DNA of 63,503 nucleotides, filler included, from Guillardia theta CCMP2712 (Eukaryota > Protista > Cryptophyta), in assembly GCF_000315625.1 (NCBI RefSeq). It is 5 parts of 5 records of this genome, joined end to end, with 100 filler letters (N's around TTAATTAATTAA, not from the genome) between each part and the next. Parts side by side here need not be neighbours in the genome. Positions count along the whole stretch, not along the records: positions 36,801 to 57,183 come from NW_005434353.1; 4 more parts are not named here. One strand, given 5' to 3'. The translations under genes were made by a program, and so were the position numbers. The notes beneath the pieces were generated by a model. The model made no database searches. It was given only the letters and a program-made list of their open reading frames with translations, and had not been told where the DNA came from. This document shows positions 6,053-56,831 of this stretch, in pieces. Numbering within the stretch: position 1 is the first letter of the stretch; each line of letters starts with the position of its first letter.

Positions 6053-6119
6053 GCACAGGTACGAATCAGTATGATAGATTTCTGATGTCTTTCCACCGAA
6101 CTATGTCGGTACCAGCACA

Positions 6120-6987: not shown

Positions 6988-6992
6988 GTTGC

Positions 6993-7152
6993 TCTTCCTC
7001 TTCCTACTACCACCTCTCCCTCTTCCTACTACCACCTCTTCCTCTTCCTACTACCACCTCTTCCTCTTCCTACTACCACCTCTCCCTCTTCCTGCTACCA
7101 CCTCTTCCTCTTCCTACTACCACCTCTCCCTCTTCCTACTACCACCTCTCCA
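6993..7152. repeat. Low-complexity tandem repeat (CTCTTCCTACTACCAC-type units)
   Basis: Directly visible; it follows the end of the recombinase remnant. Confidence 0.85.
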
Positions 7153-9608: not shown

Positions 9609-9821
9609 TGTTTTGGCTGCGGTATAGTGCTGAGATTCAACCCTGTTTCATTTTTTTGTTACTGATATAATAAGATTTTTCTATGTGATGCTTTTGTTGC
9701 CTATGCCAAAAGGTGGGTTGCCTGACCAGCCATAACACATATAAAACCTCTATGATCTACACATCTGGCCATAGCATAGACTAATACCCAAAAAAAAAGG
9801 ATTCCTTTATTATAAATAAAT

Positions 9822-36629: not shown

Positions 36630-36952
36630 GGGAAGGAGGGAGGGAGGGAGGGAGGGAGGGGAGGGAGGGAGGGAGGGAGGGAGGGAGGGAGGGAGGGAGG
36701 NNNNNNNNNNNNNNNNNNNNNNNNNNNNNNNNNNNNNNNNNNNNTTAATTAATTAANNNNNNNNNNNNNNNNNNNNNNNNNNNNNNNNNNNNNNNNNNNN
36801 TCCTTCCCCCCCAGTCGCCGCTTGTCTTCCCTCCATGACCATGAGCTGCGCCTGCCTCCTTGATGCTAGGCTTGTTTTCCTTCCCTGCCGCCTGTGCTCC
36901 ATAGGTGGCTTGCCCCTGTGCCGCGCCTGCCCCCTCACCTGCCCCCATCGGA

Positions 36953-39319
36953 CTAGGTCGACTCGCTTCCCCTTCTTGCCGTCCATAGCATGTGTTGCAC
37001 CTCCAGCAGTTGCTTGATTGCTGCTGTCTTGATGCTTTCCCATTCCGTGTCATCCACCCTTAGCCTCCTGAAATTCTCATGCCATTCCCTCTCCATGATC
37101 GATCCTTTCACTCCTGCTATGAATGTTGCTTGTTCAACTTCATGGTCAGGGAGCAGAGCTATGATTTCTGCTCGTAGATCGGCATATTTCTCTTCTTTTT
37201 CCTGAAATTTCTTCTTCAGGCATTCCAGGCTTGTGTGTTCGACTCCGTCATATTCCGATGTCCTTGCGAATTCAATGATGACGATGCGTTTGATGTTTGT
37301 AAAGTAGCAGCAACCGTCTGGTATCCATTGTCCTTCTTGGTGCATTGAAGTCCCCATCGCTTCCATCACGATGCGCATTGGAGTTTCCCACCATGTAGTG
37401 ACCTGTAGCCTTTGTTTCCTCCAACTCTGCTGCAGTCTTACCTTGATCTTCTTCATGACTTGATTGTGTGCTTGTTGGATCATTGCTTGAAACTGCCGAC
37501 ATGCCAGCTGAATATGCCCCCAGGTTTCTTCTCGGTCTGGACAGTGGGGGCAGCATGGTGAGTTAGTCTTCCCCCATTGAAAGAGCTTCTTCCTCGTCGG
37601 TACTGAGAAGGTGATTGCTTGAATTGCTGTTCGTGTGAATGAACCTTGGCATACTCTAAACGCCTTCGCGAGTAGGTTTCTGCCCACATGTACTTCAAGC
37701 ATGAATTTCTCCGTCAAGGTGAGGTCTCCCGCTCGAATCCTCGCAGTCATTGCCTGTTGTCGAATTATATAGTCCCACTTCTTCAATCTATCCATTCCTG
37801 ATGTAGGACTGTCTTCTCCTGCGATGGTGAACTCCATTGCGCTGTCATAAATCGCTTTCTCCCATCCCGAGGCAAATGTTTGTTTTGCTTGTTTGGCCAT
37901 CTCCTTTGCCTGTTGGATGTGTCGGTCAGATTCTTTTGCTAATTGAAGTCGGATCTTGATTCCTCTCCCCTCGAGTTTCTTCATGCAAGTGAGTAATCGA
38001 TCATGTAGGTCCTCCAGCAGTTCATCTTCGTATCGCATGGTATCAATGCGTAATGTATTCGTGATGAAGCGGTGAAAGCGGGTGGACTGATACATGATTG
38101 TGACTTGATTTCCCCTCTTGATTTGTATCCCTTCCTCGAGGATATGTTGGAACAGTAAGCCAATTGCAATTGTATTCGCTCGAATGATGCTGCATTTCCC
38201 ATTGATTTTCATCCCTCCTCCTGCTGCCGTCGCTTGTTGCTGGAGAACATACCCTATTCGCATGGTTCTATTTTTTCTGCTCTGTGTGACGTCTCCTTCA
38301 ATAGCTGCTGTGAAATGCCTTCCGCCTTGGTGATCGCTGCGCGGCTGGATCTGACCCCTTCGTTGGTTACACATCTCCTCATACGTTGGGAGGATGTTGT
38401 CATGAAGCTGAGCTCTGGGGTATGTTGGGAATGTGTGCTTGACGAGTATCCATAGCTCCTCTAACGTTTTCATCAGGCAACGATTCCCTGTTCCCCAAAA
38501 GTTTGCTGCGTATGCTATCTGAGCGCCTTTCGGGATCCGGCTGATAATTTCGAAGCCTTCTGGTATCTCATCAATGTTATTCTTCCATCCTATCAGAATG
38601 ACATGTATTGTGTTTTGCAGGATGTGCTCGCGAAATCTCTGTTGTTTATCTATCCAAACCACCACTCGTTGCAGTTCCTTTGCTCTCTTGTTGCTCAGAG
38701 CCTGGGGATGTGTGTGTAGTGTCGGCCAGTTACGAAATGTACTGATGTCACAATCTGTGATCTCTGCTAGGTGTTGTAAAAACTCGTATGCCAATGGTTG
38801 TGTTGTTTCTTGGCGAACCTCTGATACTACCTCTTCGAGTTGTTGCCACCATGCTGTAGCTTCTGTTTCGCCGTCGTCCAACATATTGACTATTTCCAGC
38901 AACAGATGGATACTTTGATTGCATTCTCTTCGGTGATTCCCGTCTTCTTCTTCCTTTGTTGCAGATGTGAAGGGAGCCGAGTCCAGCGACGCTTCCACCC
39001 ATTCTATTGGTGGGTCCGAGGTTGTGTTTACTCCTGTGTGGGGCGGCTCAAAGATAGCGATGTCTCCATGAACTTTGAAAGGTATGCGCCCTGAAGTGTA
39101 GCAAAATCTTTCTCGCTGATTCTTGTCGTCTCCATAGTAAGTAGCGTCATGTTGGAGGAGCTCCCTCAAAATCTCCCGGGTATGAGCCCTCCTATTTGTT
39201 TCCTCTCTCCCTTGGTCCGGTCTGGCTAGTTTCGTGGGTGGCAGGAGCTCGTGTGGGCTAGCCTCCCTTTTTCCTTTCCTTCTCTTAACCTTCTTTGCAG
39301 TGAACGGCTGTACATTGAA
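36953..39319 (-). CDS. Element A ORF2 C-terminal part: degenerate RNase H-like, CCHC zinc knuckle, restriction-like endonuclease
   Basis: The frame of ORF 36953..39169 stays open up to the inversion junction. RNase H-like IEGD..RIG..RANTIAI..IMYQS..AKEMAKQA (acidic residues lost); CPHC-x7-H-x4-C; AHNQV; PDG...IIEFARTS...KEEKYADL...AGVKGSI. Confidence 0.85.
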   Translation of the reverse strand, partial: FNVQPFTAKKVKRRKGKREASPHELLPPTKLARPDQGREETNRRAHTREILRELLQHDATYYGDDKNQRERFCYTSGRIPFKVHGDIAIFEPPHTGVNTTSDPPIEWVEASLDSAPFTSATKEEEDGNHRRECNQSIHLLLEIVNMLDDGETEATAWWQQLEEVVSEVRQETTQPLAYEFLQHLAEITDCDISTFRNWPTLHTHPQALSNKRAKELQRVVVWIDKQQRFREHILQNTIHVILIGWKNNIDEIPEGFEIISRIPKGAQIAYAANFWGTGNRCLMKTLEELWILVKHTFPTYPRAQLHDNILPTYEEMCNQRRGQIQPRSDHQGGRHFTAAIEGDVTQSRKNRTMRIGYVLQQQATAAGGGMKINGKCSIIRANTIAIGLLFQHILEEGIQIKRGNQVTIMYQSTRFHRFITNTLRIDTMRYEDELLEDLHDRLLTCMKKLEGRGIKIRLQLAKESDRHIQQAKEMAKQAKQTFASGWEKAIYDSAMEFTIAGEDSPTSGMDRLKKWDYIIRQQAMTARIRAGDLTLTEKFMLEVHVGRNLLAKAFRVCQGSFTRTAIQAITFSVPTRKKLFQWGKTNSPCCPHCPDREETWGHIQLACRQFQAMIQQAHNQVMKKIKVRLQQSWRKQRLQVTTWWETPMRIVMEAMGTSMHQEGQWIPDGCCYFTNIKRIVIIEFARTSEYDGVEHTSLECLKKKFQEKEEKYADLRAEIIALLPDHEVEQATFIAGVKGSIMEREWHENFRRLRVDDTEWESIKTAAIKQLLEVQHMLWTARRGSEST

Positions 39320-39402
39320 CGGAACATGCGCACGGGCTGAATGTCAAACAAAGGGAAGAATGATTCCGCTGTACGACAAACGTCAGGAAAACAAAGAACC
39401 AA
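39320..39402. repeat. 83-bp inverted repeat, partner at 41181-41263
   Basis: Both encode GTCARAECQTKGRMIPLYD(K/R)RQENKEP on opposite strands; one mismatch seen. Confidence 0.95.
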
Positions 39403-41180
39403 AGATCCTCTTCTTCTGCAAAAGCTGTCAATTATTCACTTCCATCAAACCACCGGACTTCGACCCCCCAGATCAAATCAATCAATATCAGACCAGGGAG
39501 ATAGAAATAGCATACCCGCTGGAGCCAGGAGAGATTCAGGTCTGGATCCAAAGACTATCCAACCGCAAGGCAGCAGGCATGGATTTGATCTCAAATGAGA
39601 TCCTGAAAGCTCTACCTGATAGCGCAAAGGAGGAGATAGGGGAAGTAATCAGCAAAGCTTTGACAGGAGACAAAAAGATGTTGAATATGCTGGCAAGGGT
39701 CAGGCTCTTACCAAAAAATGAGCTCTGTCACGTCCTGGAGAACCAACGACCTATATGCGTCCTCTCCTCGGTGACGCGGATCTTCCAGGCGGTCATAGCG
39801 CACAGACTCGCGAAAGCAGCTGAAAAACATAAGCTGCTGACGAACAACCAGGAAGGTTTCAGACCAGAGGGAGGGACGATCCGGCAGGGCCATCGTCTAC
39901 TCAACATCATCGAGGAGGCTCAGAGCAATCAACACACCCTCATCCTGTTATACCTTGACTTTGCAAACTTTTTTAACAACGTGGCAGTCGAATCCATCGC
40001 AAAAATCATGGAAGTATATGGCTTCCATCAGCGTGATGTAGACGTGGTAATCAGCGGCAGCAAAGGGATAGCACTGCAGATTCAAACAGAGAGGTTCGAA
40101 ACGGCAGCCATCCCGCTTCTCAGGGGATTACCTCAAGGCAGTCCTGCAAGTCCTCCCAAAACAAATCTACTGCTTAGCATCCTGTCCAGACAACTCGATC
40201 AACAACAAGACGAGATTGCAACTCAGCATCCCAACAACCTGTCATTCGCAGATGACCTTGTACTGATAGCCAACTCAGTGAGGGAAATGAAAACACTAGT
40301 TCAAGTGGTAGAGCGATTCTGTAGATGGAGTGGATTAGAACTGAACACGAAGAAATCTGAAATCACCAGCTTTGATTATCGGCTCAAGAGGGAGATCCCG
40401 GGGACGCAAAACATCAAGTTCTTCGACAAGGAGTTTGTGAACCTACCACCGACGAAATGGTTCAAATATCTAGGGATTCGAATCAGCTTGTGGCGATCAG
40501 GAGGAAGAGGCAACAAGGCGCACACCTGCCCCTTCACGTGGGGAGAGAAGGAGCATATCTTCGAAAAGACCAGGGAACTGACAAACCTGATTGAATCATC
40601 GGCCTACTCTGCAGCCCAGAAATACTACCTAGTCAAAGTAGGTATCGTGAATATCTTTCGATACTCGGCGGTACTCGTTAGCTGGACGTGGAAAGATTTA
40701 CAAACCTTGGATAACCTCTGGACCAGAGCGTTCAAACGAGCTATGGGATTGAGTAAGAGCACAAGCAATGCGATTTTTCGCCTACCTTGGGACAGTGGAG
40801 GCCTCCAACTCCCCCATCCAGCACCCATCTTGGGAAGGGCGGCGATTCGGTATCTAGAGAAAGAAACGAATAAGAAATGCAGGGTGGATGATGATATCAA
40901 AAGCAGTTTGATACACAAACTAACATCATGGTGCAACCAATGGGGGTGCCAAACAATAAGCCAAGTACAACGAGAAATCAGATCGGGCAGACGGGGCCCA
41001 GAACGACTCGCAATATGGGTAGCGGAGAAAATGCAGACAACTATCAGCTGGGAAATGATTGAAAGCAAGAAGAACAATCCCTGCGTACATCTCCTGCTCG
41101 GCAAGGCTGGGAGAGCTTTGCTAAGGCATGGAGAAAATTACCCCAAGTAGGCTATTACTACCTAACAAGTATCTTACCTG
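39320..41180 (+). CDS. Element A reverse transcriptase domain (inverted segment)
   Basis: KAAGMDLI, LLPK..NQRPICVLS, NQEGFR, LYLDFANFFNNV, RGLPQGSPASP, LSFADDLVL, GLELNTKKS, FKYLGI, GGLQLP: non-LTR RT motifs in order. Confidence 0.95.
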
Positions 41181-44100
41181 TTGGTTCTTTGTTTTCCTGA
41201 CGTCTGTCGTACAGCGGAATCATTCTTCCCTTTGTTTGACATTCAGCCCGTGCGCATGTTCCGCACGATATCTGCAAGTGAACGTCATCTGGGCAAAACT
41301 CGGTCAAGAGCAGGCAGGAACAGGGAAGCAATCTCATGGGGAGGAATTGCTCGATGTTTTTGTATCCTACTAAGCGCCACCCTCCTGGCTGCCCCCGGGT
41401 GATCAGTCCTCGGATGATGGGTACGATTGCGTGTGCAGGCGCCAGAGTTATGTACATCTTTTGTGGTGCCTGGTTTCTCGCCCCGAGAGTCTCGACGTGT
41501 AGCATGGTTTGATGTCTTGCATTCCAAAAGGTTTTGCTTGATTCTTTGGAGCTGCTTTGTAAGAATGTTTCGATTAACGGGTTCAGTTCTTGAAGATATG
41601 CTGTCTCCGGCTGTTGCAGCGCTGGCTGGAGATCCCTCCATGACGTAAGTTCGATTGTATTTGGGTGGCACTTCTCTGACAGTTGACTCAGCATTGGGGC
41701 TTTGGGCTTAAAGTCTGACTTCTTGCCCATTGCGTTTTGAGACTCTTTACTCCCTATCGTCCCCAAGCGTCTTCTTCGTTCGTCGCATGTTTTCAGAAAT
41801 ATCTCTTGGTCCTGTGCTGCGCAGATCTCTTTGAATTTGGTCATTGTCTCTCTTATTTCTGCGTGTAAGCTTGACTCCTTGTGTGCCCGATCAATAAAGT
41901 CGGGAATTTCTGATGCGCTTCTCAGATCCCTTTGAAGCTGCTTGAGTTTCCGTTTCAGATCCATCTGAATCTTAGATGCATGTCGTTTACCGCCTGAGCC
42001 TCGTAGGGGGATTTCCTTGGTGGGGAGGGCTGTTGTTATCAGTTCGAGAATGTCCAAGTCTTGGTGTAGGGCTTTTGCCGCTGTTATCTTCTCATCCAGT
42101 GCTATTGCCCATTCTACACCTAATCTTCCTGATAACTTGTCCATCTCGACCACCCTTTTCTTTCGTCGAGGAATTGCTTCTCGATCTCTCCTTTGCGGGA
42201 GAATTTCAATCTTTGGGATGGCTTGCTCCCCCTCAGCATCGAGCGAGCTCACATTCACTACGAGTGCTCTGTGGTCGACGGCAGCTCCTATGATGCAGTC
42301 TTCTGCGGTCTGCGATATCAGGCTTACTGTGCGAGATGGATGATGGAAAGCAAAGATATGATCCAGTTTCGCTTGGTGGTGACCCTGCTTGTACCATGTG
42401 GAGAAGGTGAAGTGTGTGCTGCTTCTGCACATCTTCTCGCAGGTGACTGTCTGGACTCGCCCAAGCTCATTTAAGACTTGCTCCATTTTCTCATCTGCAC
42501 GGTGTACACTCGAATTGCTTCCGTATCCTATTCTCATGGGGATCTCTGGATGTTGTCGAGATGCATTGAAGTCGCCTCCGATGATGATGAGCTTGATGTT
42601 TGGGTCTGGCTTGAGCATCTGGCTTAGCGCCTTCCACATGCTGTCTTGTTCCCCCTCCTCCGTCGCCACTGGCATATGGATGTTACACAAAAGTATGTTT
42701 TCTTTTTTTCGTGAGATCTGTAAAACTTGTATTTTTTGTCTGTGTGCCCCCTCCAATGCTGTACCATTTGGCGAGGAGGGGGGGCGCGGGAGAAGGTCAG
42801 CATGCGCCAGTATCACAAGGCGTAGATCACTCTTACCCTTTCTCCCAAACCCTGTACCCTTGGTCATAAACATTCGGTAACATCCCCATTCTTTCTTGAT
42901 CATCATTCGGAGATCTGTTTCCTTTTTCTTACCACGCCCCACCCTGACTTCCTGCAACATGACAATAGATGGATGATACTTCTCAATCAAATATGCCAGG
43001 ATGTGTTTCAGCACGAATTGACTGCATCCATTGATATTTTGAGAGATGATGTTGCCTGGAGCGTTGTCCTTCTTGTGGGTTTCCACCCATGCTGAGTGCA
43101 CTGACCTATCGGTGGTAGCCTCGTGTGCGTTGCTGCTTGCTGTTAGGATTTGCTCCTCCGCCTCCGATGCCCATTGAAAGTGGGACGCGTACCTCTCTTG
43201 CATCTTCGTTGGGGCTGATGGCTCCTCCTCCCCCCTAGTCTCCTTGTCGTGCTTCGAGTTTGTCTCTGCGTGCATGTCTGGTGGGGGGGAAGGTGGCTGG
43301 AGTGGAGAGACGGGGCATGGGGCGGGAGGTGGTGGAGGGGGGTATGGCAGGATGTCCCCCTGTGCTGACCTGTCTGGTATTTGCAGGGCCGCTCCGTCTT
43401 TCCATCTCTCCTCTAGCCATGCATCTTCGGCTACCTGGGTCATCTGAAGCTCGCCTGCGCGTTTTTGGCCATTCTCTCGCCTTTCCATCTGGTTAGGTCT
43501 ACGTTCCATGGTGAGCTTTGCTGCTTGCCATTCCTTGTAGCCTGTTTCTTGCGCGTGTTGTAACGCTCTGCAGATGCATTGGATCGTTTCTCGCATGTGA
43601 ACTTGTTCTAGACCCCCTCCCCAGAGCCCATCCAGCAGCAGGTGCCTTGTTCTCACGAGCCATTGTTGGTGTGGCGGGACGCCTTGTTGCCTACCTATGT
43701 TGAAGATATCGTGTTGTTGCGTCTGCTTTCGTGTCTTTGCGATCAGCAGCAGATGCAGTAGTACAAAAATTCCGCAGTTGTAGCCGTCCGTTTGTTGCAG
43801 TCCCGTTGACACACATGCCCTCCATGCCTTGTCGTCTTGTTCTTGTTGGTCGCTAATTGCCTCGGTGATGATCGTCGCCACGAGTGATGCTAGGTCCATT
43901 CGCTGTGCGCCCCCCAATTGAAACTGTGCATCCCTTTGACTTCTGACTGTCCCCAGGTCTCTCTCCCCGGCCGTGTTGAGCGAGTCGACGATGTGTATTC
44001 TTTTTGTGTTGACATCTGCCACGATTAGGATCCAATGATTGCCGTTTTCTACGCATGGGAATAATAATGGTTGAGCTGCTCCGGCTAACAGTCGCTTTGC

Positions 44101-44529
44101 TCTCCTTGCCCTTCCCTCCTGATCTCTCAAACCCGCTACTATTCTCGGGAGAACAATGGTCCCTCTCTGCAGCCCAAATTGGTTTCTAGTTTGCTCGCTG
44201 GCATACCTCGTGCCTTGGAGCCATGCTATTTGAAATCTGTCTTCCGCTGGTTCTAAATTTCGGTTTACCTCAACGATTAAAGCCTCCATAACGTCCTCAG
44301 AGAGAAATCCATCTTCTCCTGAGTTGAGCAGCGCCGCTGCTCCGTACTCTCTATTGTTTTCCCGTAGACTCCAGGGGATCTCCCCTATCAAGTCGAATGT
44401 TTGTATTTTTCTGTTTTTTGGATTCTTTTTGTCATTCTTTTTCTCACCTTCTTGTCTCTTTCTGCTTGATTCCACCACGCCCTGGTGCCCACTGTCCCAC
44501 CTGCCCTCTCCTCCTCCTCCTGCTTCCAT
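41181..44529 (-). CDS. Element A ORF2 N-terminal part: Ulp1/C48 cysteine protease plus APE endonuclease
   Basis: Protease LLFP...NHWILIV...IVDSL...QQTDGYNCGIFVL (about 43740-44330); APE IISQNING, IVMLQE, NIHMP, GGDFN, KLDHIF, VDHRAL (about 42260-43055). Confidence 0.9.
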
Positions 44530-46682
44530 TAGGCGTCAAGCGGCGCGGTTGGGGAGGAGTCAAGCGACATCTCTTCCACTTCTACCGCTCTGCTCCCTGC
44601 TTCGGGTGCATCTTCCACTCGCGCGTCTTCCATCTGTATCTCACTGCTCAAAACAAGTTTCAATTCGTTTCTGTCTCCCAGCATTCCTACGAGGGAGAGC
44701 GCCGTTTCCTCCAGGAATTTATTCAAAGCAATGAAGAGAAGGTCAGTTTTCAAGGGCTTCTCCTCATTTGGTGCGAAAGCGCTGCTCTTGCGTTTCGCTA
44801 CCTTCCACGTATGCTTGCCTGCAATCACCCTGACTCGTTCACGCAGTCGCTTGCTCACGGCATTCTCTGCCGCGTTGGCACCCTTATCAGCCCACTCTTG
44901 TAGCGTGGGGAAGGATGCATTTCCTGGGCTCTCCGGAGCCATCTCTTGCACCGCGTCATCAAGATGGAGTTGAAGCTGCCCTTGCTGTTGCAGCTCGCTC
45001 CTAGTTACGTCAGCAATAGTTTCCTTAAGTTCTTCGACGACCACGTCCGTTCCCGCATCTGGGAAGTTGGTTTCATTGATAATGGAACTGAGCTCGATCT
45101 CTTTCCACACAGTTCCCTCTGCTCTGGTCCCCGTCGTTTGTGACCTGGCCTCAGGGTTAGACTGATCGCGAGTTGCCTGAGGCGACACTTTGAGGTTCAG
45201 ACTGCTCGCTGTCGTTTGGATTTCAACTGTGCCTTGCCAGCAGAGGAGCTGTGTGGGGAATTCAGCCATCATCTTTCTTGCACTACTTTCACTGCGTAGC
45301 CGGAGAATGATACCAGACCCATCCCAGATCCCTGTTTCTGGATCGCATTGGAGGTGGATCCGTTGGAGATCTTTTTCCACCTGTGGATCAAAGCAAGCGA
45401 CAGCCCTCCGAATGTTTCGGATGACTTTTGCTCTGCCCGTTTCGTCACTTGCGCAGATTTTTTCGATCTCATTTCGGGAGAACTTCCCTGACGGCACAGG
45501 AGAGGAGATTTGTACCGAGTACAGCATCTCTGCTCCCGTTGCCATTGCCGTGCCCTCTTGTCGCACCGCATTCTTCATATTCTTGTGCAGCGCCGTTGCT
45601 TCCATCTGCACTGAGAACCATTTCAGTATTTTGTCATTCTCTGAGACCAGTCCCAAAGTGACTCCTGCACGATCCTTTCCATGTCGATCGAATGCTTGAA
45701 GAACGATGTCCGCTGCTTCAAGGCTCGAGCACGTTGCGATCCAGTCGACCTCTCTGTTCTGGTTGACTGTTTCTATTCCTACCGCAGCGAACACCTTCTT
45801 TGGCGGTAGGTTCCTCTTGGGGGGGAGGTTCACTGTCATTCCCGCGTTTGGGATCAGATCAATGATCGCTAATCCCTGCTTCAGGCATAGCTGCCTGTAG
45901 ATCTCACATATGTCACCTGTGCTCGAATCGTTGAGCATCAGGAGTTGGGCCACCTCAGCTAGGATTCCAACTCTGCTCATGTTCTCCTTCTTTGGCCGCA
46001 TCTTGAACGAGATCGGTGGGTTGGCTGCTGGGTTCACTGCTAGAATCCTCCTGCCTGCCACCTTGAAGGTACCCTCTCCTTTCCAGAGTTTCTCAGCCGC
46101 CTCATTGCGGACAAATGTGATCACTGCTGGGATCTCCGCTGCCTGCACAAGGTCAGGCTTCAAGGGAGCCTTGAAGATCAGGCTCCTGCTATCTTGCGTC
46201 TGATCGACGATCAAGCCTTGCTCTTCAAGCTTGAGGCATAAGTTTTCCACCTGTCTGGAAAAGTATGCAGGGATCCCAAGTACCTTCATGGTAATCGTCT
46301 GCACATTGGTGCCCTGATCATCATATGATCTGGCCTCCATCTGCCTTTGTCTGTCAGCTTGGAACTCTGACAGGTACCACTGCTTGACATCGTCACCCCA
46401 CTGCCTGAACCCTTTCGGATTCTCCAGTGACGAGGGTTCAGCAAAGCTGCATGTCTGACTGATGGCTTCGGCTAAGGCTTCCAAGGAAATTTCTTTTGCT
46501 TTCAGAGCTTTGCTCGTCCTGCTTTTGGGGTTCTGCCTTGCGAATTCATCCAGTCTCCGCATCAGTTCGGCTGATGACGGCATCGTTGCAGCTTCCGTCT
46601 GCCTCTTGAGGTAGCTGGAGGTACGGTACTGCACGATCTCGTCAGGGTTCACAATAGATATTGGCCACATGTTTCGAAGCAT
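44529..46682 (-). CDS. Element A ORF1 (717 aa, gag-position protein)
   Basis: Intact ORF whose TAA overlaps the ORF2 ATG. Homologous to the B and C ORFs (FKAPLKPD..EIPAVITFVRNEAAEKLW, SAFAP, LLFIALNKF). Confidence 0.85.
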   Translation of the reverse strand: MLRNMWPISIVNPDEIVQYRTSSYLKRQTEAATMPSSAELMRRLDEFARQNPKSRTSKALKAKEISLEALAEAISQTCSFAEPSSLENPKGFRQWGDDVKQWYLSEFQADRQRQMEARSYDDQGTNVQTITMKVLGIPAYFSRQVENLCLKLEEQGLIVDQTQDSRSLIFKAPLKPDLVQAAEIPAVITFVRNEAAEKLWKGEGTFKVAGRRILAVNPAANPPISFKMRPKKENMSRVGILAEVAQLLMLNDSSTGDICEIYRQLCLKQGLAIIDLIPNAGMTVNLPPKRNLPPKKVFAAVGIETVNQNREVDWIATCSSLEAADIVLQAFDRHGKDRAGVTLGLVSENDKILKWFSVQMEATALHKNMKNAVRQEGTAMATGAEMLYSVQISSPVPSGKFSRNEIEKICASDETGRAKVIRNIRRAVACFDPQVEKDLQRIHLQCDPETGIWDGSGIILRLRSESSARKMMAEFPTQLLCWQGTVEIQTTASSLNLKVSPQATRDQSNPEARSQTTGTRAEGTVWKEIELSSIINETNFPDAGTDVVVEELKETIADVTRSELQQQGQLQLHLDDAVQEMAPESPGNASFPTLQEWADKGANAAENAVSKRLRERVRVIAGKHTWKVAKRKSSAFAPNEEKPLKTDLLFIALNKFLEETALSLVGMLGDRNELKLVLSSEIQMEDARVEDAPEAGSRAVEVEEMSLDSSPTAPLDA

Positions 46683-46777
46683 TCTCGATGGTTTCCCGAG
46701 CTTCCTGCGTTCCTGGCGACTCTTGCTCTACCACGCAGGGACCCCGCTGATCTGCATGCCTCAGATAAAGGGATCCT

Positions 46778-47103: not shown

Positions 47104-49882
47104 TTATTATTATTATTATGTGAGTTTATTAGAATGCTAGAATGTTGCTCGGCCTCGTTGTGGGCTTATGCAATTTGATCCTAGTCTAAAGAGGCGCTCG
47201 AGCACTGGGAGTACACGGCCTACAATGCGAACCCTGCTTCTGAGGCGTCTTTCTACTCTCTACTTCTGCTGTCTTCTCTTGGCTTCCTCAGCCTCAGTCA
47301 GGAGAGTTGCCTCTCCTCACCTTGGCCTTCGGTCACCACCTACTCTACCTCCATTCAGCTTCCTCAGCCTCAGTCAGAAGAGTTGCCTCTCCTCACCTTG
47401 GCCTTCGGTCGCCACCTACTCGTCCTCCATTCAGCTTCCTCAGCTTCAGTCAGGAGAGTTGCCTCTCCTCACCTTGGCCTTCAGTCGCCTCCTACCTTCT
47501 CTCCTTACCTTGGGCTCAGCTCAAGCTCGGTACGGGCTCGCCCCGTCTTCTTCCTCGCCCTCGCCTTGCTCTTCCTCCATGTCTTCCTCTTCTTCGTCAT
47601 CTTCCCTCATCTCCACCCGCAGTCGGTCCTTCTTGTCCACCTTCAGCGAGCAGGCCAGCACATGCATCTCTGCGAATTTACTCAGTGCTATGAACAGGAA
47701 GCTAAGAGATCGACGCTCTATGTCGTCGCTCTCCGCCTCCTGCTCAAGCTCAGCAGCTGCCGTTGCCCGTGGCGAGAACGCGCTGCCCCTCCTTGCCTTC
47801 TTGCTCTCTCCTTGCACGCGAGTCCAGCGCTTGCTCTGCAGCCACTTCCCCAGCTTCTCCTTGAGAACGTTGCGCCCAACTCCCTGCTCCTCTGGCATCT
47901 TCGCCCACTCTCCCAGCGACATGAACTCCAGGCTCCCCGGAGAGTAGAACGTGTCGTGGAGGTTGCCAACGGCCTTGTCCAGGACCAGCTTGATCGGCTC
48001 GCTCGTCCCCGCCTCGTTCAAAGAAGCTGCATCTTCGATGACTGCTGACAGCTCGCTGACGAGCTGCATGTCCTCTTGGCTTGACGGAGATGCTGCCTCC
48101 ATTGTGATCCTCTCCAGGTCTGTAAACTCCAGCCACTCTCCCTCGCTTTCCTCCTGTCGCTGCGCTGCGTCGCTGGTGCCCCGCTGACCAGCCGCCTCAG
48201 AGTCAGGCTCCTTGTCGAAGCCGACTGCTTCGAGCTTGGTTGCTGCGCCTTCGAGATAGAAGGGCAGCTCCTTCATCATGCGTCGAGCATCCTCCGTGGA
48301 GCCGAGGAGGATGCATAGCTTGGACCCGTTCCAGGACTTGGTGTTCAAATCCTCCTCCATGTCGATGCCTTCAACGTTGATCTCGAGCCTGTTAGCGATC
48401 TCCAACAAGACTCTCTTGACTCTTGCGATAGACGTGTTGCCGCCGTTGCACAGCCCCTCCATCTCCTTCCTCGTGAAGCGACCAGATGCCGCCGTCGACT
48501 TGATGATGATCTTGATCTCCTTGCCGTCCTTGCCGCCTGCCTTCTTCTGCATCCTTGATGCCTTCTTCAACTTATTTCTGGACACAAAGCGATCAGCTGT
48601 CAACTCGACTGCGAGCGCCTCTCTGATCTTCGGGTCCTCGCTGAACAGAGTCAGGTGTACTCCCTCCATCGCTTCGCTCTCTCGGAAAGCTCGAAATGCT
48701 GTATCATTCGCCTCTGGGCAGCTCGAGGAGACGATCCACTCCACCTCCCTCTGTCTCCAGATGACGTTGGCCCCTACAGCGATGAAGCCTTTCTGACCTA
48801 AGCCTTTGTGGACTTGCTGTCCTGGCGCCCCAGCGACCAGCATGCCTGCCAGCGGCTGGAGTTGGACCGCTGCAAGGGACTGGCGCAGCAGCTGATAGCG
48901 ATAGACGGCAGCTATCTCAGCCGTTGTCATGCCGCCCAAGGTTAGCAGGTGAGTCAGCTCTGCCAAGCTGCCCCCTTTGCCCCAGGGTCCTCTCTTGGCT
49001 CGAATCTTGAAAGATCGATCGTGCACGATGCTCACATGTACAGCTGTGAACTTGCGACCATCGATCGCGAAGTCCTCTCTTCCCTGCCAGAGCTTCTCCG
49101 CTTGTGCATTGCGGAGGAAGGAAACAGTCACCGGGATCTCCTCAGCACTCGCTATCTCGGGTCTATACGGAGCCTTCCACATGATCGCTTTACTCTCTTG
49201 CACTGAGTCTACGATCAGTCCGATCTCTTCAAATTTCTTCTTCAGCTTTTCTTCATGGTTGACATACACCGAGGAGATGCCCAGGAGAGTCATGGAGATG
49301 AAGGAAGTCACCTCGTTGCCTGCTGAGGCGGTGTATGTCTCGACCTTCTCCTTCTTGGCTTCTTCAATCTGCTGCATAAACCACTCTCTGGATGCGTCAC
49401 TCCATCCAGCCATCGCTTCTTGCAGAAGCTCACGTCGTGCCTGCTGACATGTCGAGCGGATGGCTTCTGCGATAGCGTCGGGGGTGCATCCCTCCACAGC
49501 CTTGCAAGCCTGGGCTGTCCTGCTGTTCGGATAACGCTTCGCGAAGCTCTTCACCCTCTCGACGAGATCAGCTTCGAGGACAGAGGCATCCACAAGTCCG
49601 CTCTGCGTGTATTGGCATGATCTCCGATACAGCAGGTTGCGAACATTTTCATCATACTGAAGAACCATACTTAGAAAGCTATTTGAAGTATACAAACCTC
49701 TTGCTTGCAGCTTCCTTGGCGCCCTGGCGGCTTCCCCTACACCTGACGAGGAGCCATGCTGCCGAAAACAACGGCGCCTCCATGCTGCCGAAAATAACGG
49801 CGCCTCCATGCTGCCGAAAATAACGGCGCCTCCATGCTGCCGAAAATAACGGCGCCTCATGCTGCCGAAAATAACGGCGCCT
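47104..49882 (-). mobile_element. Element B: ORF1-only non-autonomous telomeric-repeat retroelement
   Basis: Five 26-bp repeats at the 5' end (49754-49882), ORF1, 3' UTR with 76-bp repeats, AATAAA, (TAA)n tail, and TTTAGGG tracts on both sides. Confidence 0.85.
47521..49668 (-). CDS. Element B ORF1 (715 aa from MVLQY)
   Basis: Start placed by homology to the element C ORF (MVLQYDE.VRNLLYRRSCQYTQ). The longer track ORF only reads through the 5' repeats. Confidence 0.85.
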   Translation of the reverse strand: MVLQYDENVRNLLYRRSCQYTQSGLVDASVLEADLVERVKSFAKRYPNSRTAQACKAVEGCTPDAIAEAIRSTCQQARRELLQEAMAGWSDASREWFMQQIEEAKKEKVETYTASAGNEVTSFISMTLLGISSVYVNHEEKLKKKFEEIGLIVDSVQESKAIMWKAPYRPEIASAEEIPVTVSFLRNAQAEKLWQGREDFAIDGRKFTAVHVSIVHDRSFKIRAKRGPWGKGGSLAELTHLLTLGGMTTAEIAAVYRYQLLRQSLAAVQLQPLAGMLVAGAPGQQVHKGLGQKGFIAVGANVIWRQREVEWIVSSSCPEANDTAFRAFRESEAMEGVHLTLFSEDPKIREALAVELTADRFVSRNKLKKASRMQKKAGGKDGKEIKIIIKSTAASGRFTRKEMEGLCNGGNTSIARVKRVLLEIANRLEINVEGIDMEEDLNTKSWNGSKLCILLGSTEDARRMMKELPFYLEGAATKLEAVGFDKEPDSEAAGQRGTSDAAQRQEESEGEWLEFTDLERITMEAASPSSQEDMQLVSELSAVIEDAASLNEAGTSEPIKLVLDKAVGNLHDTFYSPGSLEFMSLGEWAKMPEEQGVGRNVLKEKLGKWLQSKRWTRVQGESKKARRGSAFSPRATAAAELEQEAESDDIERRSLSFLFIALSKFAEMHVLACSLKVDKKDRLRVEMREDDEEEEDMEEEQGEGEEEDGASPYRA

Positions 49883-49921
49883 CCTAAACCCTAAACCCTA
49901 AACCCTAAACCCTAAACCCTA
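49883..49921 (-). repeat. Telomeric tract, about 5.5 copies of TTTAGGG
   Basis: CCTAAACCCTAAA... between the 5' end of B and the 3' tail of C. Confidence 0.95.
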
Positions 49922-50511
49922 GTAGTAGTAGTAGTTGAGTTTATTAGAATGCTAGGTAGGTTGCATGGCTTGTTATCACCTTGCTCTACTCTAGTCTAAC
50001 AGGGATCTCGTGACCTGGCAGTTCGGCCCGACTTGGCTGGCCCTTATGGCAGCCGTGCTTCTGCTCTGCTCCCTCCTCTGATATACTTGAGTGGTCTTCC
50101 CCGGCCTCAGCCAGTGGAGTTTCCTCCGCCGGCCTTGGCCTGGGTCGTCCGTGCTTTCAACTTGTGTTGCTTCCTCGGCTCCGACACACCTTGGCGGTCT
50201 CGGCCGGCCTTCGGCCAGTGAGTGAATGAGGGATAAGGACAATCAGGAGATAAGGTGGTAGGTGGAATGCGTATGGGTCCCTGGGACTCACGTCCCTTCC
50301 CCCGGGCCTCGGTCCGGACCGGGCCCGAGAGCCCGGCCGGCCTCCGCCCGGCCTCCTCCTCCCGGCCCCCCTCCCCCCTCCCCCACCGGCTTACCTGCCC
50401 TTACCTTCGTTGCTTGCCCCATGTCCACCTGCTTTATTTCTTCCTCCTTCCCCCCATGGGGCCCACAGCTCCGCTCCGCCTCTTGTCCACCTCTAAGACT
50501 TGACTCGAGCC

Positions 50512-52662
50512 TCAAGCGCGCGAGGGGCCTGCACCGGCCTCCTCCTCCACGCCCTCGCCCTCCTCAGCCTCCATGTCGACTTCCTCCCTCATCATCAGCC
50601 GCAGTCGGTCTTGCTTGTCGACCTTGCCCGTGCAGCTCAACCCATGGTGCTCAGCAAATTTACTGATCGCAAGAAACAAGAGGCTAACAGATCGACTCTC
50701 GATGTCATCGCTCTCAGCCTCCTGCTCGAGCGCATCAGTCGCTGCTGCCCTTGGAGAGAAGGCGCTGCCCCTCCTCGCTGCCTTGTTCCCTTGCACCCGT
50801 GTCCAGCGCTGCTCGCCGAGGTACGCTCTGAGCTTTTCTTTCATCATGTTTCGCTTCGATCCCAGCGTCGGCGTGGCTGCCCAAGCTCCGAGCGTCATGA
50901 ACTCCACGTTGCCCGGCGAGCAGAAGGTGTCATGCAGCTTCCCAACACTCTTGTCTAGCTCCAGCGAGATCGGCTTGCCAGCTAGCAGCTCCTCCTCTGA
51001 TGTCTCCAAGAGCATCGTCGAGAGGTCGAGCAAGACCTGTTGGTCGACTGGCCCTGACGGTGACGCTGCTTCCATAGTAATCCTGTCGATGTCGCTGAGC
51101 TCCAGCCATCCAGCGCCTTGCTGCTGCCCTTGGGGCTCTTGGGCTTGCTCCTCGCTGCTCGGGCTCCTCTCCTCCTCATGCTGAGGGTTGAGCTTAAAGC
51201 CCATAGCTTCCAGCTTGACTTCCAGGATCCCTTCCAAGTAGAAGGGCATGTCTTCCATCAAGCGTCGAGCCTCTGCCTTGGTCGCCAGGGAGAGAGCTAT
51301 CAGGCTCCCATCCCAGCTGAGCGTGTCACGATCCTCCTCGACCTCGACGCTGACCAGCTTGAGGTTCATTCTTCTTGCTAACTCCAACATGGCTCGCTTG
51401 ACTCTCGTGATCGATGTGTTACCTCCTCCGCACAGCGCTTCCATCTCCTTCCTCGAGAAGCGGCCTGTGCTCATGCTTGACCTCGACTTGATCTGTACTC
51501 TGAAGCTGCTGCGCCCCGCATGATCTCTCTCGCGAAGTGCCTTCCTCTGCTTGGCAATCTTTCCCCTCGGCACGAAGGTGTCGGCTGTGAGCTCGACTGC
51601 AAACGTCTCTCTGAGCTTGGCGTCGTCGCTGATGAGAGTGAGATGCACCCCCTCCATCGCCTCGCTCTCTCTGAACGAGGCCAAGGTCTGCTCGCAACTT
51701 GCCGTCGAAGGCGAGCTGAGCACCCACTCCAGCTCTTTTTGCTGGAGAGTGCCCGTACTTGCCCCAACAGCGACATACGTCTTCGGGCTCGGCCCCTTGC
51801 GACCTCTCTGCCCAGGACCTTGCACGAGCATGCCTGCAAGCGGTTGTACCTCTGCGGCTGCAAGAGATTGCGAGAGCAGCTGAAATCGATAAATCTGAGC
51901 GATCTCAGCCGTCGACATTCCTCCGAGAGCTAAGAGCTGCGATAGCTCGGCAAGGCTCCCTCCCTTGCCCCAAGGTCCTCGCTTGGCTCGAAGCTTGAAC
52001 GACCGGTCGTGTGCAATGCTCACCTCTGTGGCTCGGAAGGCTCTCCCTTCTATGCAGTATTCTCTCCTGCCTTCCCATAGCTCCATGGCTGCTTCATTCC
52101 GAAGGAAGGAGACGGTGACTGAGATGTCGTCTGCTCGTGCTATCTCAGGTCTGTAAGGTGCTTTCCACATGATGGCCTTGTCGACTCCATCGACTGAGTC
52201 TACCATGAGACCTAGCTCCATAAGCTTCGATTTCAACTTTTCTTCTTGTCGAACAAACATCGAGGAAATCCCTAGGAGAGTCATGGAGATGAAGGAGGTC
52301 CCCTCGGTGCCTTCGGTGCCGATGTATGTCTCGACATTCTGCTTCTTGGCCTCCTCCATCTGTTGAATAAACCATGCTCTCGACTCTGAGCTCCATTCAC
52401 TCAGAGAGTCTTCAAACAGGTCGCGTCTCGCCTGCCGACATGTCGAGCGGATGGCTTCAGCGATAGCGTCGGGAGTGCATCCCCCCTCAGCTCTGCAAGC
52501 CTGAGCTGTCCTACTACCAGGATACCGCTTCGCGAAGTTCTTCACCCTCTCGACGAGGTCGGCGGCCTCCTCGGCGTGGCCTCCAGAGCGCTCGCCCTGC
52601 GTGTATTGGCATGATCTCCGATACAGCAGGTTGCGAACGCTCTCATCATACTGTAGTACCAT
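50512..52662 (-). CDS. Element C ORF1 (716 aa)
   Basis: Intact and collinear with the B ORF over its whole length (AKRGPWGKGGSLAEL, FRESEAMEGVHLTL, RRGSAFSPRA), more distantly with A. Confidence 0.88.
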   Translation of the reverse strand: MVLQYDESVRNLLYRRSCQYTQGERSGGHAEEAADLVERVKNFAKRYPGSRTAQACRAEGGCTPDAIAEAIRSTCRQARRDLFEDSLSEWSSESRAWFIQQMEEAKKQNVETYIGTEGTEGTSFISMTLLGISSMFVRQEEKLKSKLMELGLMVDSVDGVDKAIMWKAPYRPEIARADDISVTVSFLRNEAAMELWEGRREYCIEGRAFRATEVSIAHDRSFKLRAKRGPWGKGGSLAELSQLLALGGMSTAEIAQIYRFQLLSQSLAAAEVQPLAGMLVQGPGQRGRKGPSPKTYVAVGASTGTLQQKELEWVLSSPSTASCEQTLASFRESEAMEGVHLTLISDDAKLRETFAVELTADTFVPRGKIAKQRKALRERDHAGRSSFRVQIKSRSSMSTGRFSRKEMEALCGGGNTSITRVKRAMLELARRMNLKLVSVEVEEDRDTLSWDGSLIALSLATKAEARRLMEDMPFYLEGILEVKLEAMGFKLNPQHEEERSPSSEEQAQEPQGQQQGAGWLELSDIDRITMEAASPSGPVDQQVLLDLSTMLLETSEEELLAGKPISLELDKSVGKLHDTFCSPGNVEFMTLGAWAATPTLGSKRNMMKEKLRAYLGEQRWTRVQGNKAARRGSAFSPRAAATDALEQEAESDDIESRSVSLLFLAISKFAEHHGLSCTGKVDKQDRLRLMMREEVDMEAEEGEGVEEEAGAGPSRA

Positions 52663-52750
52663 GCTTAGAAGCTGTTTGAACTATACCAAGAACTTGCTCG
52701 CAGCTTCCTCCGGTCCCCTTGCGCTCTCCCTACGCGCCGCGGATGTGCAT

Positions 52751-53190
52751 GCCTCGGGAAGGGGCGGCCTTGCCTCGGGAAGGGGCGGCCTTGCCTCGGG
52801 AAGGGGCGGCCTTGCCTCGGGAAGGGGCGGCCTTGCCTCGGGAAGGGGCGGCCTTGCCTCGGGAAGGGGCGGCCTTGCCTCGGGAAGGGGCGGCCTTGCC
52901 TCGGGAAGGGGCGGCCTTGCCTCGGGAAGGGGCGGCCTTGCCTCGGGAAGGGGCGGCCTTGCCTCGGGAAGGGGCGGCCTTGCCTCGGGAAGGGGCGGCC
53001 TTGCCTCGGGAAGGGGCGGCCTTGCCTCGGGAAGGGGCGGCCTTGCCTCGGGAAGGGGCGGCCTTGCCTCGGGAAGGGGCGGCCTTGCCTCGGGAAGGGG
53101 CGGCCTTGCCTCGGGAAGGGGCGGCCTTGCCTCGGGAAGGGGCGGCCTTGCCTCGGGAAGGGGCGGCCCTTGCCTCGGGAAGGGGCGGCC
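52751..53190. repeat. 21-bp tandem array (GCCTCGGGAAGGGGCGGCCTT), about 21 copies
   Basis: Near-perfect units; one has an extra C. Confidence 0.97.
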
Positions 53191-53230: not shown

Positions 53231-53915
53231 CCGCCGGTCGTACACGATGAACTCCCTGTGCTTGTCCAGACACGCCTGCGGGTGAGTGTCTTGCGTTACT
53301 CCGATCACTGAGTCATGCAGCCGGCTGCTGCCCGGCATGGCTGGTGGTCGTCGAGCTCTCCTCATGGTTTGCAGGGCCTCGTACGGCGTTCCTAGCGCCA
53401 CAGGCTCGCACGAGCAGCATGCGGCAGATCCCGCGGCTGTCGGGCGTGCAGTACTCGTCGCTCTTGCTGGAGTTCTCCGCTAGGTAGACCCCAGCTCCGA
53501 ACAAGCCTTCTAGGCTGCAGACCCGCTCGTCGAGCCCGGACTTCAAGATAGCTTCCGCCATGTCGTGCTTGGTCCCGTGGAACAGAAACACCTCGTTGCT
53601 CGTCTTGTCCTGTAGCAACGAGCTCTTCATCCAGTCTCTCCAGGTGCTGACCTTGGTCTTAGGGTGTCGATTCCCCTGCTGCAACATGAGCTGACCTATA
53701 GATCTTCGCTCTAGAGCATACGCCGACCACAGCCCCGCATGCTCTACACGGAAGACTCGCTCCACCTCGTATCCTTTATACTTGAGGCCCTTGTTGTCTC
53801 TTCCTTGCGCTGCTGGGGTAACACTCTGACTTTTTTTTAAGATGCTTTCGCTGCGCTTTTCTCTGAAAGAGTCCAAAAAGGCATTTTTCCAGTCTGCCAG
53901 CCCTCCATTGGATGC
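53231..53915 (-). pseudogene. PARP catalytic domain (tankyrase/PARP12-like), frameshifted near 53400 and 3'-truncated
   Basis: NEVFLFHGT, GLFGAGVYLAENSSKSDEY, RMLLVR, then in another frame VALG...HDSVIG...REFIVYD (H-Y-E triad). The final strand is missing. Confidence 0.85.
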
Positions 53916-54030
53916 TTCCAGTGTCTCTCGTACCTCTCCATATCCCCTTGGATGCTTCCAGTGTCTCTCGTACCTCTCCATATCCCCTTGTATGCCACCA
54001 GTGCCTCTCGTACCTCTCCATATCCCCTTG
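53910..54030. repeat. 39-bp tandem repeat, three copies, possibly intronic
   Basis: CCAGTG(T/C)CTCTCGTACCTCTCCATATCCCCTTG units. Confidence 0.85.
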
Positions 54031-56831
54031 AGCCCATTTTTTCCATCTCGCCGGGATCCCACAGACTTCGTATTTTTGCGAGAAAAAGAGTGCGTCATGA
54101 AGTCAGTGGGATGTTGGCATGAATTGAAAAAACAAATGGCGCACCCAGCGGTAGCGGTGACGGGGAGTTACCCAACTTGTTGGGTGACTCCACGGCAGGG
54201 GGCATGAATCCACTAATATAAGGACTGTGTGAGTTTCCGCGCATAATACGTAAGAACGAACTTTATTTCTTTCTCTATCTGCTCTTCTCAATCGCTATCA
54301 GAGCCTGCTGTCTCAATCATAGGCTTGCGAGAGATGCTGCCAGTCTGCGTCCTCGTCGCGTGAGTCGATTGACTCTGTGAGGAGTCTGAAGGCAAGCGTT
54401 AACCCTGCTCTGAATGTCTGTCATAGCCTTCTCCATCAACAAGCTTGTCAATTTGATCTGCTTGGCCTCGAGCGGCGACAGAGGGTAGGGGTAGGCGGGA
54501 CTTGGGGAATAATGTGGAGGTCAACTGTACAACGTAAGTTTGACCTTTTCAGCGAACTTTGAAATCCTCCCCTCAGATTTCAAGATATCCACCAAACCCT
54601 CTTTCAACTATCTCCCTTATCTGACTTCATTGTCATCTGAAGGTTTCAAGTTTTGGAGCAATCTTTCAGCCCCCTCCAAGAATCCATTTCACTTTCAAAC
54701 TTCTTTCTACGTCTCACCGAAACATTTCAAGTTTCAGTGGTTATAGCAGTGTTCGCCGCTGATTCCTCATTGGCCCCGGCTGCCGCCCGGGCCCCGGGCG
54801 CACCCGGGCCCGGCAGTGAAGTACAAAGGGGGCCCGGCGACTGAGTGTCGAGGCCCGGGACCGAGGAGATTTTCAGATTTCCTGAGGCTCCGCTGAGCTC
54901 GATCCACCCTTGAAGCCAGGGGTCAGCTGGCAGTGGCGAGGGAGCGCTCGGACCTGCCAGCTCGGAACTTCGGAAGCCAGGGTCAAGCCTTCAGTGACCA
55001 GCTGTTATTAGCAACAGGCCCGCTCAGCTCGTGTCACGGCTCATGACCATATGCTCTCAGCTCGTCAGCCTCATCGCCCCCCCGTCAGCAAGACCTCTGG
55101 GTGTCTCTCAGCTCCTTCACTGAGCACAACCCGACATGCAACACAAGAGGGCTACCGGGCATCGACTCATCCGATCAGATCGCGCACATGACGTTTCCTC
55201 GGTGACTCAACTGGATCTCGTGAGACGCAGTGGAGTGAAACGAACTTTGATTGATCAGACATTCAAGATCCGGAGTTACCCCCTGCGTGAGCGAGTGCGC
55301 CCCAGTGACCCGACGAGCTCTGGTGAAGTTGCTGCAACGCAAGACGCACCCCTCCTGTTTACCTTGTAAGTCCCCCACGGGTACTCGGTTGCTGCAACAA
55401 AGACCTCCATAGGGGTCCTTTCAGCAGCTTCACACTGGAGTAGAGTATCCTGGGTCATCCATCGGAGCACGAGTACGAGGCAGCCAGCTGTCCTTTCATT
55501 CTGATAGGCCTTTGTCTGAGTCGGGCTCGGTTCCTATGAGCTCTGACAGCTCAGTGACCCGAGGAGCTGTGATGAGATCAGAGCCGCGAGCAGCTGAGAA
55601 CCTCTGATCAGCACACGGTGACTCTTGGGACAAGCGATGCTCGGCACGAACCAACTTGTCTCTTCGTCTCGGGTCGACGCGCGGCGTCAGGTGACCGATG
55701 GCAGCGTCTCACGCGGGAGAGTGGAAGAAGGTGTCAAGTTTTGGAGCAATCTTTCAGCCCCCCCCATGAATCCATTTCACTTTCAAACTTCTTTCTACGT
55801 CTCACCGAAACTCATTTCAAGTTTCAGTGTTGCCAAGAGAAACAAGAGTGAGAGACTGATGGCTTCTGCTAACTTTGAAATCCTCCCCTCTGATTTCAAG
55901 TATTCAAGTATTATTTCAAACTCATTTCAAGTTTCAGTGTTGCCAAGAGAAACAAGAGTGAGAGCAGAGTGACTCTAGAGCAAGATGGGGTGATGGATGG
56001 GAGGGAGAGATGAATGGGAGGAGAGAGAGGATGTCTTGTCGCATGTGATGATGGATGAAGACATCGGGGGGGTTTATCGCTCTCTCTGCTCTCTCATGGA
56101 CGCGATGCTGAGCCATCTTAGGTTGGCGAGTGTCTGCCGGTACACTCGGAGGACTGTTTACGAAGCGGCGGCTCTTCCACACTGTGTGAGACTGGAATGA
56201 GTTTCAAACGGTCTCAAGACTCTGAAATCCTCGAGTCTGATTTCAAAATCAGACTCGAGAAATTCCGTGCGCCACACAACGTCGGTCCACTTGGAGCAAG
56301 CTTGATTTCGATCCGTCATGACCCAGCAGTCTCAACCCTCGTTGACATGCCCAATCATGTTGATGCAATTCCAGTGTCACACTCTGAAATTCTCGGGTCT
56401 GATTTCAAAATCAGACCCGAGAATTTCCGTGCGTTGGTGTTTTTTCGTTTCTGCTGCAAACTCGTGCAACCCCATCGAGTCTCGTTACACACATTCAGAC
56501 GACTCTTCTCTTCAATGAGGCTCTCTCTCTAGCCGCAAGTTGTTTCAAGTCAGCCCTATCACTAGTATCCCAGCCACAACTTGTTCGATCCGTCTTCGCA
56601 TGCACTCTAGGAAAAACAAGCCTCTCCCCAGCCAGATTGGTCGGTCGGATATCAGCTACACTGTGGACCGGACATGAAGTTGCCGGAAAACACTCGGAGC
56701 TACTAGTCGATTCCGAGTCTCACAGTTGTTTCAAGTCTCTTGATCATCAGCTTTGAGTAGGATGCAATCAGCAACTCCCAGGAGACTGCGATCTAGGCAA
56801 GTGTTCATGTCACAGAGCTGCTGGTGGCTAG

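Follow-up and report, generated by a model that had tools for sequence, protein, structure and literature searches.

A two-ORF Dualen-type retrotransposon of Guillardia theta with two endonucleases and a probable telomeric target

Elements of the Dualen/RandI group from Chlamydomonas, which Kojima and Fujiwara are said to have described in 2005, reportedly carry an APE-type endonuclease and a restriction-like endonuclease (RLE) in one open reading frame (ORF), with the reverse transcriptase (RT) and RNase H between them. Later work described the cryptophyte element Dualen-1_GCr of Geminigera cryophila, with SET, C48 peptidase, APE, RT, RNase H, CCHC and RLE domains (Lescot et al., 2016, PMC5029228), and LINE/Dualen elements have been found in the cryptophyte genomes compared in a 2025 study, apparently expanded in all but G. 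theta (PMC12747079). Ulp1 proteases occur in NeSL and Utopia elements (PMC4640811), and Dualen-4b of Chlamydomonas shows widespread insertion with long target duplications (PMC9977147). In this study, we have analysed a stretch of 63,503 nucleotides (nt) from Guillardia theta CCMP2712 (assembly GCF_000315625.1; hereafter the window), and describe a region of it, on NW_005434353.1, that we read as one copy of a two-ORF, Dualen-type retrotransposon without long terminal repeats, belonging to a family specific for telomeric (TTTAGGG)n. We estimate the probability of this reading at roughly 0.85.

In the window copy, a minus-strand ORF1 (46682 to 44529, 717 amino acids) is followed by a minus-strand ORF from 44529 to 41158, a plus-strand ORF containing the RT (39234-41150, 638 amino acids) and a third ORF, again on the minus strand (39169 to 36953). 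A preliminary description of this DNA had read the last three as a single Dualen-type ORF2 with APE, RLE and an Ulp1 protease, beside a separate ORF1, and intact relatives in which the pieces are joined bear this out. Long relatives have the identical domain set in identical order within one ORF. Uninterrupted ORF2s are present on three metagenome contigs, L001 (2481 amino acids), L003 and L004 (2575 amino acids each). The ORF2 protein of L001 (P0110) aligns with the three window pieces in order, at 33%, 55% and 44% identity, and falls into one 90%-identity cluster with a protein of Guillardia theta; L003 and L004, which also have an ORF1, are much closer to the window copy. On the ORF2 of L003 the pieces fall at residues 1-1119 (70% identity), 1078-1687 (88%) and 1798-2575 (80%), and in L003, L004 and P0110 the RLE is encoded in the same ORF as the RT.

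The position of the middle piece on the opposite strand, flanked by an 83-nt inverted repeat, could speak for three different nested elements that no single ORF2 ever joined, an outcome that the preliminary description had itself named as fatal to its reading. Against such an origin, the pieces map in order onto the single ORF2s of L003, L004 and P0110 and overlap only at the duplicated arm of the repeat. In addition, a single ORF of the relative P0128 spans the RT tail and the C-terminal part, and contigs of other copies run from the N-terminal part in frame into the RT. We therefore regard a nested origin as refuted by collinear intact relatives and give it next to no probability. The host is a cryptophyte: four proteins of Guillardia theta CCMP2712, GUITHDRAFT_114135 among them, match the window ORF1 at 89-97% identity, and the array in which the element lies has 96-99% DNA identity to scaffolds of GCA_000315625.1. 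An intact ORF2 was not recovered from the G. theta reference scaffolds; the intact ones stand on the metagenome contigs, at 80-87% DNA identity. Intact members of the family would be expected to make a bicistronic RNA, in which an ORF1 of about 715 amino acids (function unassigned) ends in TAATG and is followed by an ORF2 of 2575 amino acids. This ORF2 encodes, in order, the Ulp1/C48 protease, the APE, a Cys-rich motif, the RT, a long linker, an RNase H fold, a CCHC knuckle and an R2-type RLE.

The catalytic motifs of both nucleases and the His-Asp-Gln-Cys set of the C48 protease are all found where they had been described. Peptidase_C48 matches residues 155-272 of the first piece (E 3.8e-6; 27.3 bits for a cut-off of 20.7), with the His in NGNHW (44020-44046), the Asp in HIVDSL (43978-43995) and the Gln and Cys in QQTDGYNCG (43771-43797), and the domain recurs in L003, L004, P0082, P0025 and P0114. 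Exo_endo_phos matches residues 496-733 of the same piece (E 9.7e-6) and is above the cut-off in P0110 too; the APE has its full set of N, E, D-N, D and D-H motifs, and these are conserved between families of only 33% identity. The proposed Pfam check was thus positive for Peptidase_C48, Exo_endo_phos and RVT_1; zf-RVT matched weakly and in the last piece only, and RNase_H had no match in the window. The N-terminal piece of 1123 amino acids, used as a query, returned no homologous proteins, probably as a length-window effect, since full-length relatives exist; phmmer, with the N-terminal or the C-terminal piece as query, found no useful match in the PDB, and only a profile search succeeded there. 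The Cys ribbon proposed between APE and RT is in part confirmed, as a true Cys-rich motif stands before the RT in the inverted middle piece; the one read at 41328-41264 on the minus strand is antisense linker, the stretch LPCSCLLLTEFCPDDVHLQIS of the first ORF being such antisense sequence. The RT, with its FADD motif at 40245-40256, has its best matches among PDB sequences in R2 (7e-23) and L1 ORF2p (2.5e-13).

Downstream of the linker, we confirmed the RNase H-like stretch that had been described as lacking its acidic residues. By alignment to P0082, P0085, P0078 and P0089, all of which pass Pfam RNase_H, the catalytic D, E, D and D are replaced by E, N, Q and K. The AlphaFold2 (AF2) model has an overall pLDDT of 56.6, with about 70-80 in the core (residues 63-211), where the strand-helix order is that of RNase H, and in the PDB Foldseek matches it best to RNase HI of bacteria and archaea (E 6e-7; target TM 0.6-0.68). 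The acidic positions are equally degenerate in the closest relatives of the element, whereas more distant ones retain DEDD and an active-looking domain. A dead RNase H of this kind shows that the domain can persist as a scaffold.

The C-terminal domain had been predicted to model as a PD-(D/E)xK fold, and it does. The last piece, searched against the full database, gave 107 relatives, of which 40 were aligned; the H of AHN, the PD, the R of E-F-T-R, the K and the Y of the RLE are nearly invariant among these 40. With this alignment, the C-terminal 269 residues (CCHC and RLE) were modelled by AF2 at a pLDDT of 95.3 and a pTM of 0.90. Foldseek places R2 proteins first (9dou, 9nl3, 9nl2, 8gh6; E 4e-9 to 2e-5, TM 0.64-0.69) and cap-snatching PD-(D/E)xK nucleases next, and the profile matches R2Tg in the PDB with an E of 2.5e-23, aligning the CCHC, RHN, KPD, D-V-T and K..KY.

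The second part of our reading concerns the target. In the window, in L003 and in L001, 3' ends consist of TCTAATAAACTCA and (TAA)n or (TAC)n, after which comes TAGGGTTTAGGG; those of L001 and L003 read TCTAATAAA.. with a trinucleotide repeat before TAGGGTTTAGGG, and like ends lie upstream in the window. The 5' end of the window copy directly follows the TTTAGG of a short telomeric tract (at 46778). Telomeric repeats are present on both flanks of L003 and at the 3' end of L001. Full-length and truncated copies are thus telomere-flanked, with fixed junctions and in one orientation, as seen at the 5' junction in the window, at the neighbouring 3' ends, and in L003 and L001. We found no report of a telomere-specific Dualen in the searchable literature. 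With the G-rich strand as the sense strand, the 3' OH that primes reverse transcription must be supplied by a nick on the C-rich one. One of the two nucleases would make this nick, the RT would copy the RNA from the 3' OH, and the other nuclease would cut the G-rich strand for second-strand synthesis. RNA removal would be left to host RNase H, and the protease probably serves to process the polyprotein or to strip a host factor of SUMO.

In the telomere-specific LINEs SART1 and TRAS1, the APE domain determines the target, and by this analogy it is more likely that the APE would serve as the first-strand nuclease and the RLE as the second-strand nuclease. The reverse arrangement, in which priming would start from a nick by the RLE, as it does in R2, and the APE would be the second-strand or an accessory nuclease, seems to us possible and the weaker choice. 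The CCHC-RLE module has clear homology to the one that makes the priming nick in R2, the RT sequence is closer to R2 than to L1, and the APE scores weakly in Pfam. Against this stand the role of the APE in SART1 and TRAS1, the conservation of all APE motifs across distant families, and the N-terminal zinc-finger/Myb DNA-binding domains that R2 requires, which Pfam did not find here. To our knowledge, it has been unclear since 2005 why Dualen elements keep two endonucleases and how these divide their labour. A short, defined and repetitive target, precise junctions and intact copies (L003, L004) make the roles of the two nucleases directly testable.

We next consider how the family relates to described systems. 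The preliminary description had proposed a distinct Dualen-like lineage with a different protease, a view that is only partly right: the C48 layout was published for the cryptophyte Dualen-1_GCr in 2016 (PMC5029228), and the element comes from a cryptophyte rather than from a green alga. The layout of ORF2 is thus already known; the differences here are two ORFs with a TAATG overlap, no SET, a dead RNase H and a telomeric target. With the cryptophyte Dualen elements (Dualen-1_GCr, Dualen-5_CCu) the window family shares the order of C48, APE, RT, RNase H position, CCHC and RLE as well as the host group. Unlike them, it has a separate, TAATG-coupled ORF1 where they have one giant ORF, its RNase H is without catalytic residues, and it is telomere-specific, whereas PMC5029228 is silent on such insertion. 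Pfam finds no SET match in either ORF of the window copy, of L003 or of L004; the relative P0025 does have a SET domain, like Dualen-1_GCr. APE and RLE in one ORF are shared with Chlamydomonas Dualen/RandI, whose host group differs, and the insertions of Dualen-4b are not in telomeric repeats (PMC9977147).

The comparison extends to elements with a single endonuclease. R2 (R2Bm, R2Tg) has a homologous CCHC and RLE (E 2.5e-23, TM 0.65-0.69) and is site-specific too, but it is a single ORF that lacks APE, protease and RNase H fold and addresses 28S rDNA through its N-terminal zinc-finger/Myb domains. NeSL-1 and Utopia-1_TSP share the N-terminal Ulp1-like protease, the RT and the C-terminal RLE (PMC4640811); they are without APE, belong to nematodes and target spliced-leader or U2 genes. 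In NeSL and Utopia the RLE is the sole endonuclease, and the window element, with its APE, falls outside that definition. SART1/TRAS1 of Bombyx and HeT-A/TART of Drosophila are likewise telomere-dedicated LINEs, but belong to the R1 and Jockey clades and have APE only. The 3' end of the window family points towards the chromosome tip, opposite to HeT-A/TART, and a nick rather than chromosome-end priming would therefore be needed. An origin of the family unrelated to Dualen, with APE and RLE acquired independently, is in our view improbable. Two ORFs, no SET and a dead RNase H set the family apart from described members; nevertheless, relatives in which C48-APE-RT-RNase H-zf-RLE stand complete and in this order came up in the search with the C-terminal piece, one of them with an N-terminal SET.

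The window copy itself is rearranged and dead, and cannot encode the rebuilt protein. Relative to L003, the minus strand from 46795 to 41329 corresponds to 607-6070 and that from 39286 to 36833 to 8264-10705. Between them lies an inverted block that contains the Cys motif, the RT and part of the linker, in which plus-strand 39287-41074 corresponds to 6103-7911, 41078-41178 to 7970-8070 and 41263-41329 to 8159-8225. About 216 nt are lost, 32 and 38 nt at the block edges, 58 nt inside and 88 nt by replacement with a reverse copy of an 83-nt stretch of the block, the two arms being 99% complementary. The ORF2 that had been rebuilt from the three pieces holds up as one element; its boundaries do not, as 39319-39287 belongs to the inverted block and the lost stretch is missing from it. 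We rejected the 83-nt inverted repeat as the inversion boundaries, both arms being inside the block. Also rejected were foreign filler or introns at 41075-41182 and 41264-41328, both of which are element sequence.

A 62-nt query over the junction 39286/39287 matched no public run listed (2 sampled words), and contigs of four public runs stop at 39287, 41074, 41182, 41263 and 41329, each going on as uninverted element. Since every loose end at the breakpoints has the uninverted form, and the three pieces are all ORFs, rearrangement aside, the inversion could be an assembly artefact of a repetitive chromosome end at which the real locus holds an intact element. We regard this as possible, if the less likely case. 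The blank junction query is weak, with its two sampled words, and the pattern is not a simple flip but includes four small losses and an 83-nt reverse insertion; such complexity is more typical of template switching, in replication or reverse transcription, than of a misjoin.

Several points weigh against our overall reading of the locus as a copy of a telomere-specific Dualen-type family. The blank junction query is one of them, and the inversion may be private to the assembly or an assembly error. The sequences give no sign that any copy is active, and the 3' end of the window copy falls outside the piece. The APE score is barely over the Pfam cut-off in the window (25.9 against 24.5 bits) and under it in L003 (17.8) and L004 (16.8), the motifs being kept nonetheless. 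Finally, Dualen membership rests on domain content and on the literature. Table 1 gives the coordinates of the features.

Table 1. Features of the window copy (positions of the window; coordinates of L003 are those of the contig unless residues are given).
Feature	Position	Strand	Basis or remark
5' end and 5' untranslated region (UTR) of the autonomous element	46683..46777	-	Sequence read; collinear with L003 from position 607
ORF1, 717 amino acids, without Pfam family	44529..46682	-	95% identical to GUITHDRAFT_114135
TAATG, ORF1 stop and ORF2 start sharing one base	44527..44531	-	
ORF2 N-terminal part, normal orientation	41329..44529	-	L003 ORF2 residues 1-1066; blastn 46795 to 41329 = L003 607-6070; blastp 70% identity
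Ulp1-like C48 cysteine protease	43714..44067	-	Pfam PF02902 Peptidase_C48; His, Asp, Gln and Cys all there
APE-type endonuclease	42259..43044	-	Pfam PF03372 Exo_endo_phos; motifs QNING, LQEV, GDFN, LDH, VDH
Inverted block, 2.04 kb	39287..41329	+	L003 6103-8225 on the opposite strand; blastn and local alignment against L003 and L004
Linker segment	41263..41329	+	L003 8159-8225; minus-strand reading gave a spurious 'LPCSC...'
Arm 2 of the inverted repeat, reverse copy of arm 1	41181..41263	-	In place of L003 8071-8158
Reverse transcriptase	39711..40484	+	Pfam RVT_1, E 4.6e-29; 88% identical to L003 ORF2 residues 1078-1687
True Cys-rich motif between APE and RT, C-x5-C-x4-C ... C-x2-C	39309..39428	+	Conserved in L003, L004 and L001
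Arm 1 of the 83-nt inverted repeat, normal place in the block	39320..39402	+	L003 6137-6218
ORF2 C-terminal part, normal orientation	36953..39286	-	L003 ORF2 residues 1798-2575; blastn 39286 to 36833 = L003 8264-10705; blastp 80% identity; 88% identical to P0128
RNase H fold without catalytic residues	37877..38323	-	Alignment, AF2, Foldseek
CCHC zinc knuckle	37499..37555	-	C, C, H, C invariant in 40 relatives; aligns to R2 CCHC
RLE (PD-(D/E)xK) core: AHN, PDG, IEF..R, K..KY	37184..37474	-	AF2, Foldseek, profile
3' UTR start, cut by the edge of the piece	36801..36952	-	

The one-base overlap of ORF1 and ORF2 also occurs in L003 (at 2873) and L004, and SART1 likewise uses a UAAUG stop-start overlap. 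In L001, which represents a more distant G. theta-like family, ORF1 and ORF2 are 9 nt apart (L001 2270-2284), and the coupling signal therefore differs between these sister families. The ORF1 proteins of the window and of L001 are 35% identical, and a search of the ESM Atlas with ORF1 gave nothing at 0.8 or above. The 3' UTR of L003 is about 460 nt long and is followed by a (TAA)n tail.

Next to the autonomous element, the window holds two complete ORF1-only elements on the minus strand (49922-53188 and 47104-49884). They have 5' tandem repeats (21 nt x21; 26 nt x5), one ORF each (716 and 779 amino acids) and their own 3' UTR, which ends in CTAGCATTCTAATAAACTCA and (TAC)n or (TAA)n just ahead of telomeric repeats. 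Their ORFs share 30% identity with the autonomous ORF1 and 58% with each other, with no ORF2 homology behind them, and the same ORF1-only family stands after L003. We rejected the possibility that these units are 3'-truncated copies capped by healed telomeres, as each has a complete 3' end with the family motif. Rather, they look like non-autonomous partners that use the ORF2 protein of the autonomous element, and their place beside it recalls that of HeT-A beside TART. The order of an ORF1-only element and then an autonomous one recurs at 96-99% identity in two scaffolds of GCA_000315625.1, JH993036.1 (L005) and JH993140.1 (L006), with a scaffold end in L006, which suggests that the array structure is common to several G. 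theta chromosome ends. We lean, by a modest degree, towards a view of G. theta chromosome ends as head-to-tail arrays of a telomere-specific dual-endonuclease LINE and ORF1-only partners that share its 3' terminal motif, a HeT-A/TART-like system that would have evolved independently in a cryptophyte. If so, a defined target sequence would be known for a Dualen for the first time; the searchable literature gave no account of such a system.

Other observations concern the surroundings of the element. Between 46778 and 47216, the minus strand is a mosaic of very short element ends. Pieces of the 3' terminus, some 50-130 nt long and each carrying (TAA)n and 2.5-5.7 telomeric repeats, are interleaved there with 5' end pieces of 20-40 nt (GGATCCCTTTATCTGAGG). 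This mosaic suggests that insertion into short telomeric tracts was repeatedly aborted or ended in heavy truncation. At 53313-54098, also on the minus strand, a 261-amino-acid ORF with a PARP catalytic-type motif (HGT ... GAGVYLAENSSKSDEY) is probably a host-gene exon just centromere-side of the array. Finally, contigs of one public run (X13, guessed to be RNA) skip GT..AG stretches of 45-71 nt on the strand antisense to ORF2, as plus-strand introns within 38038-39136 and minus-strand introns within 39457-40786, that is, in the C-terminal part and the inverted block. The skipped stretches suggest that an antisense transcript running across the element is spliced; the joints are absent from all three DNA runs.

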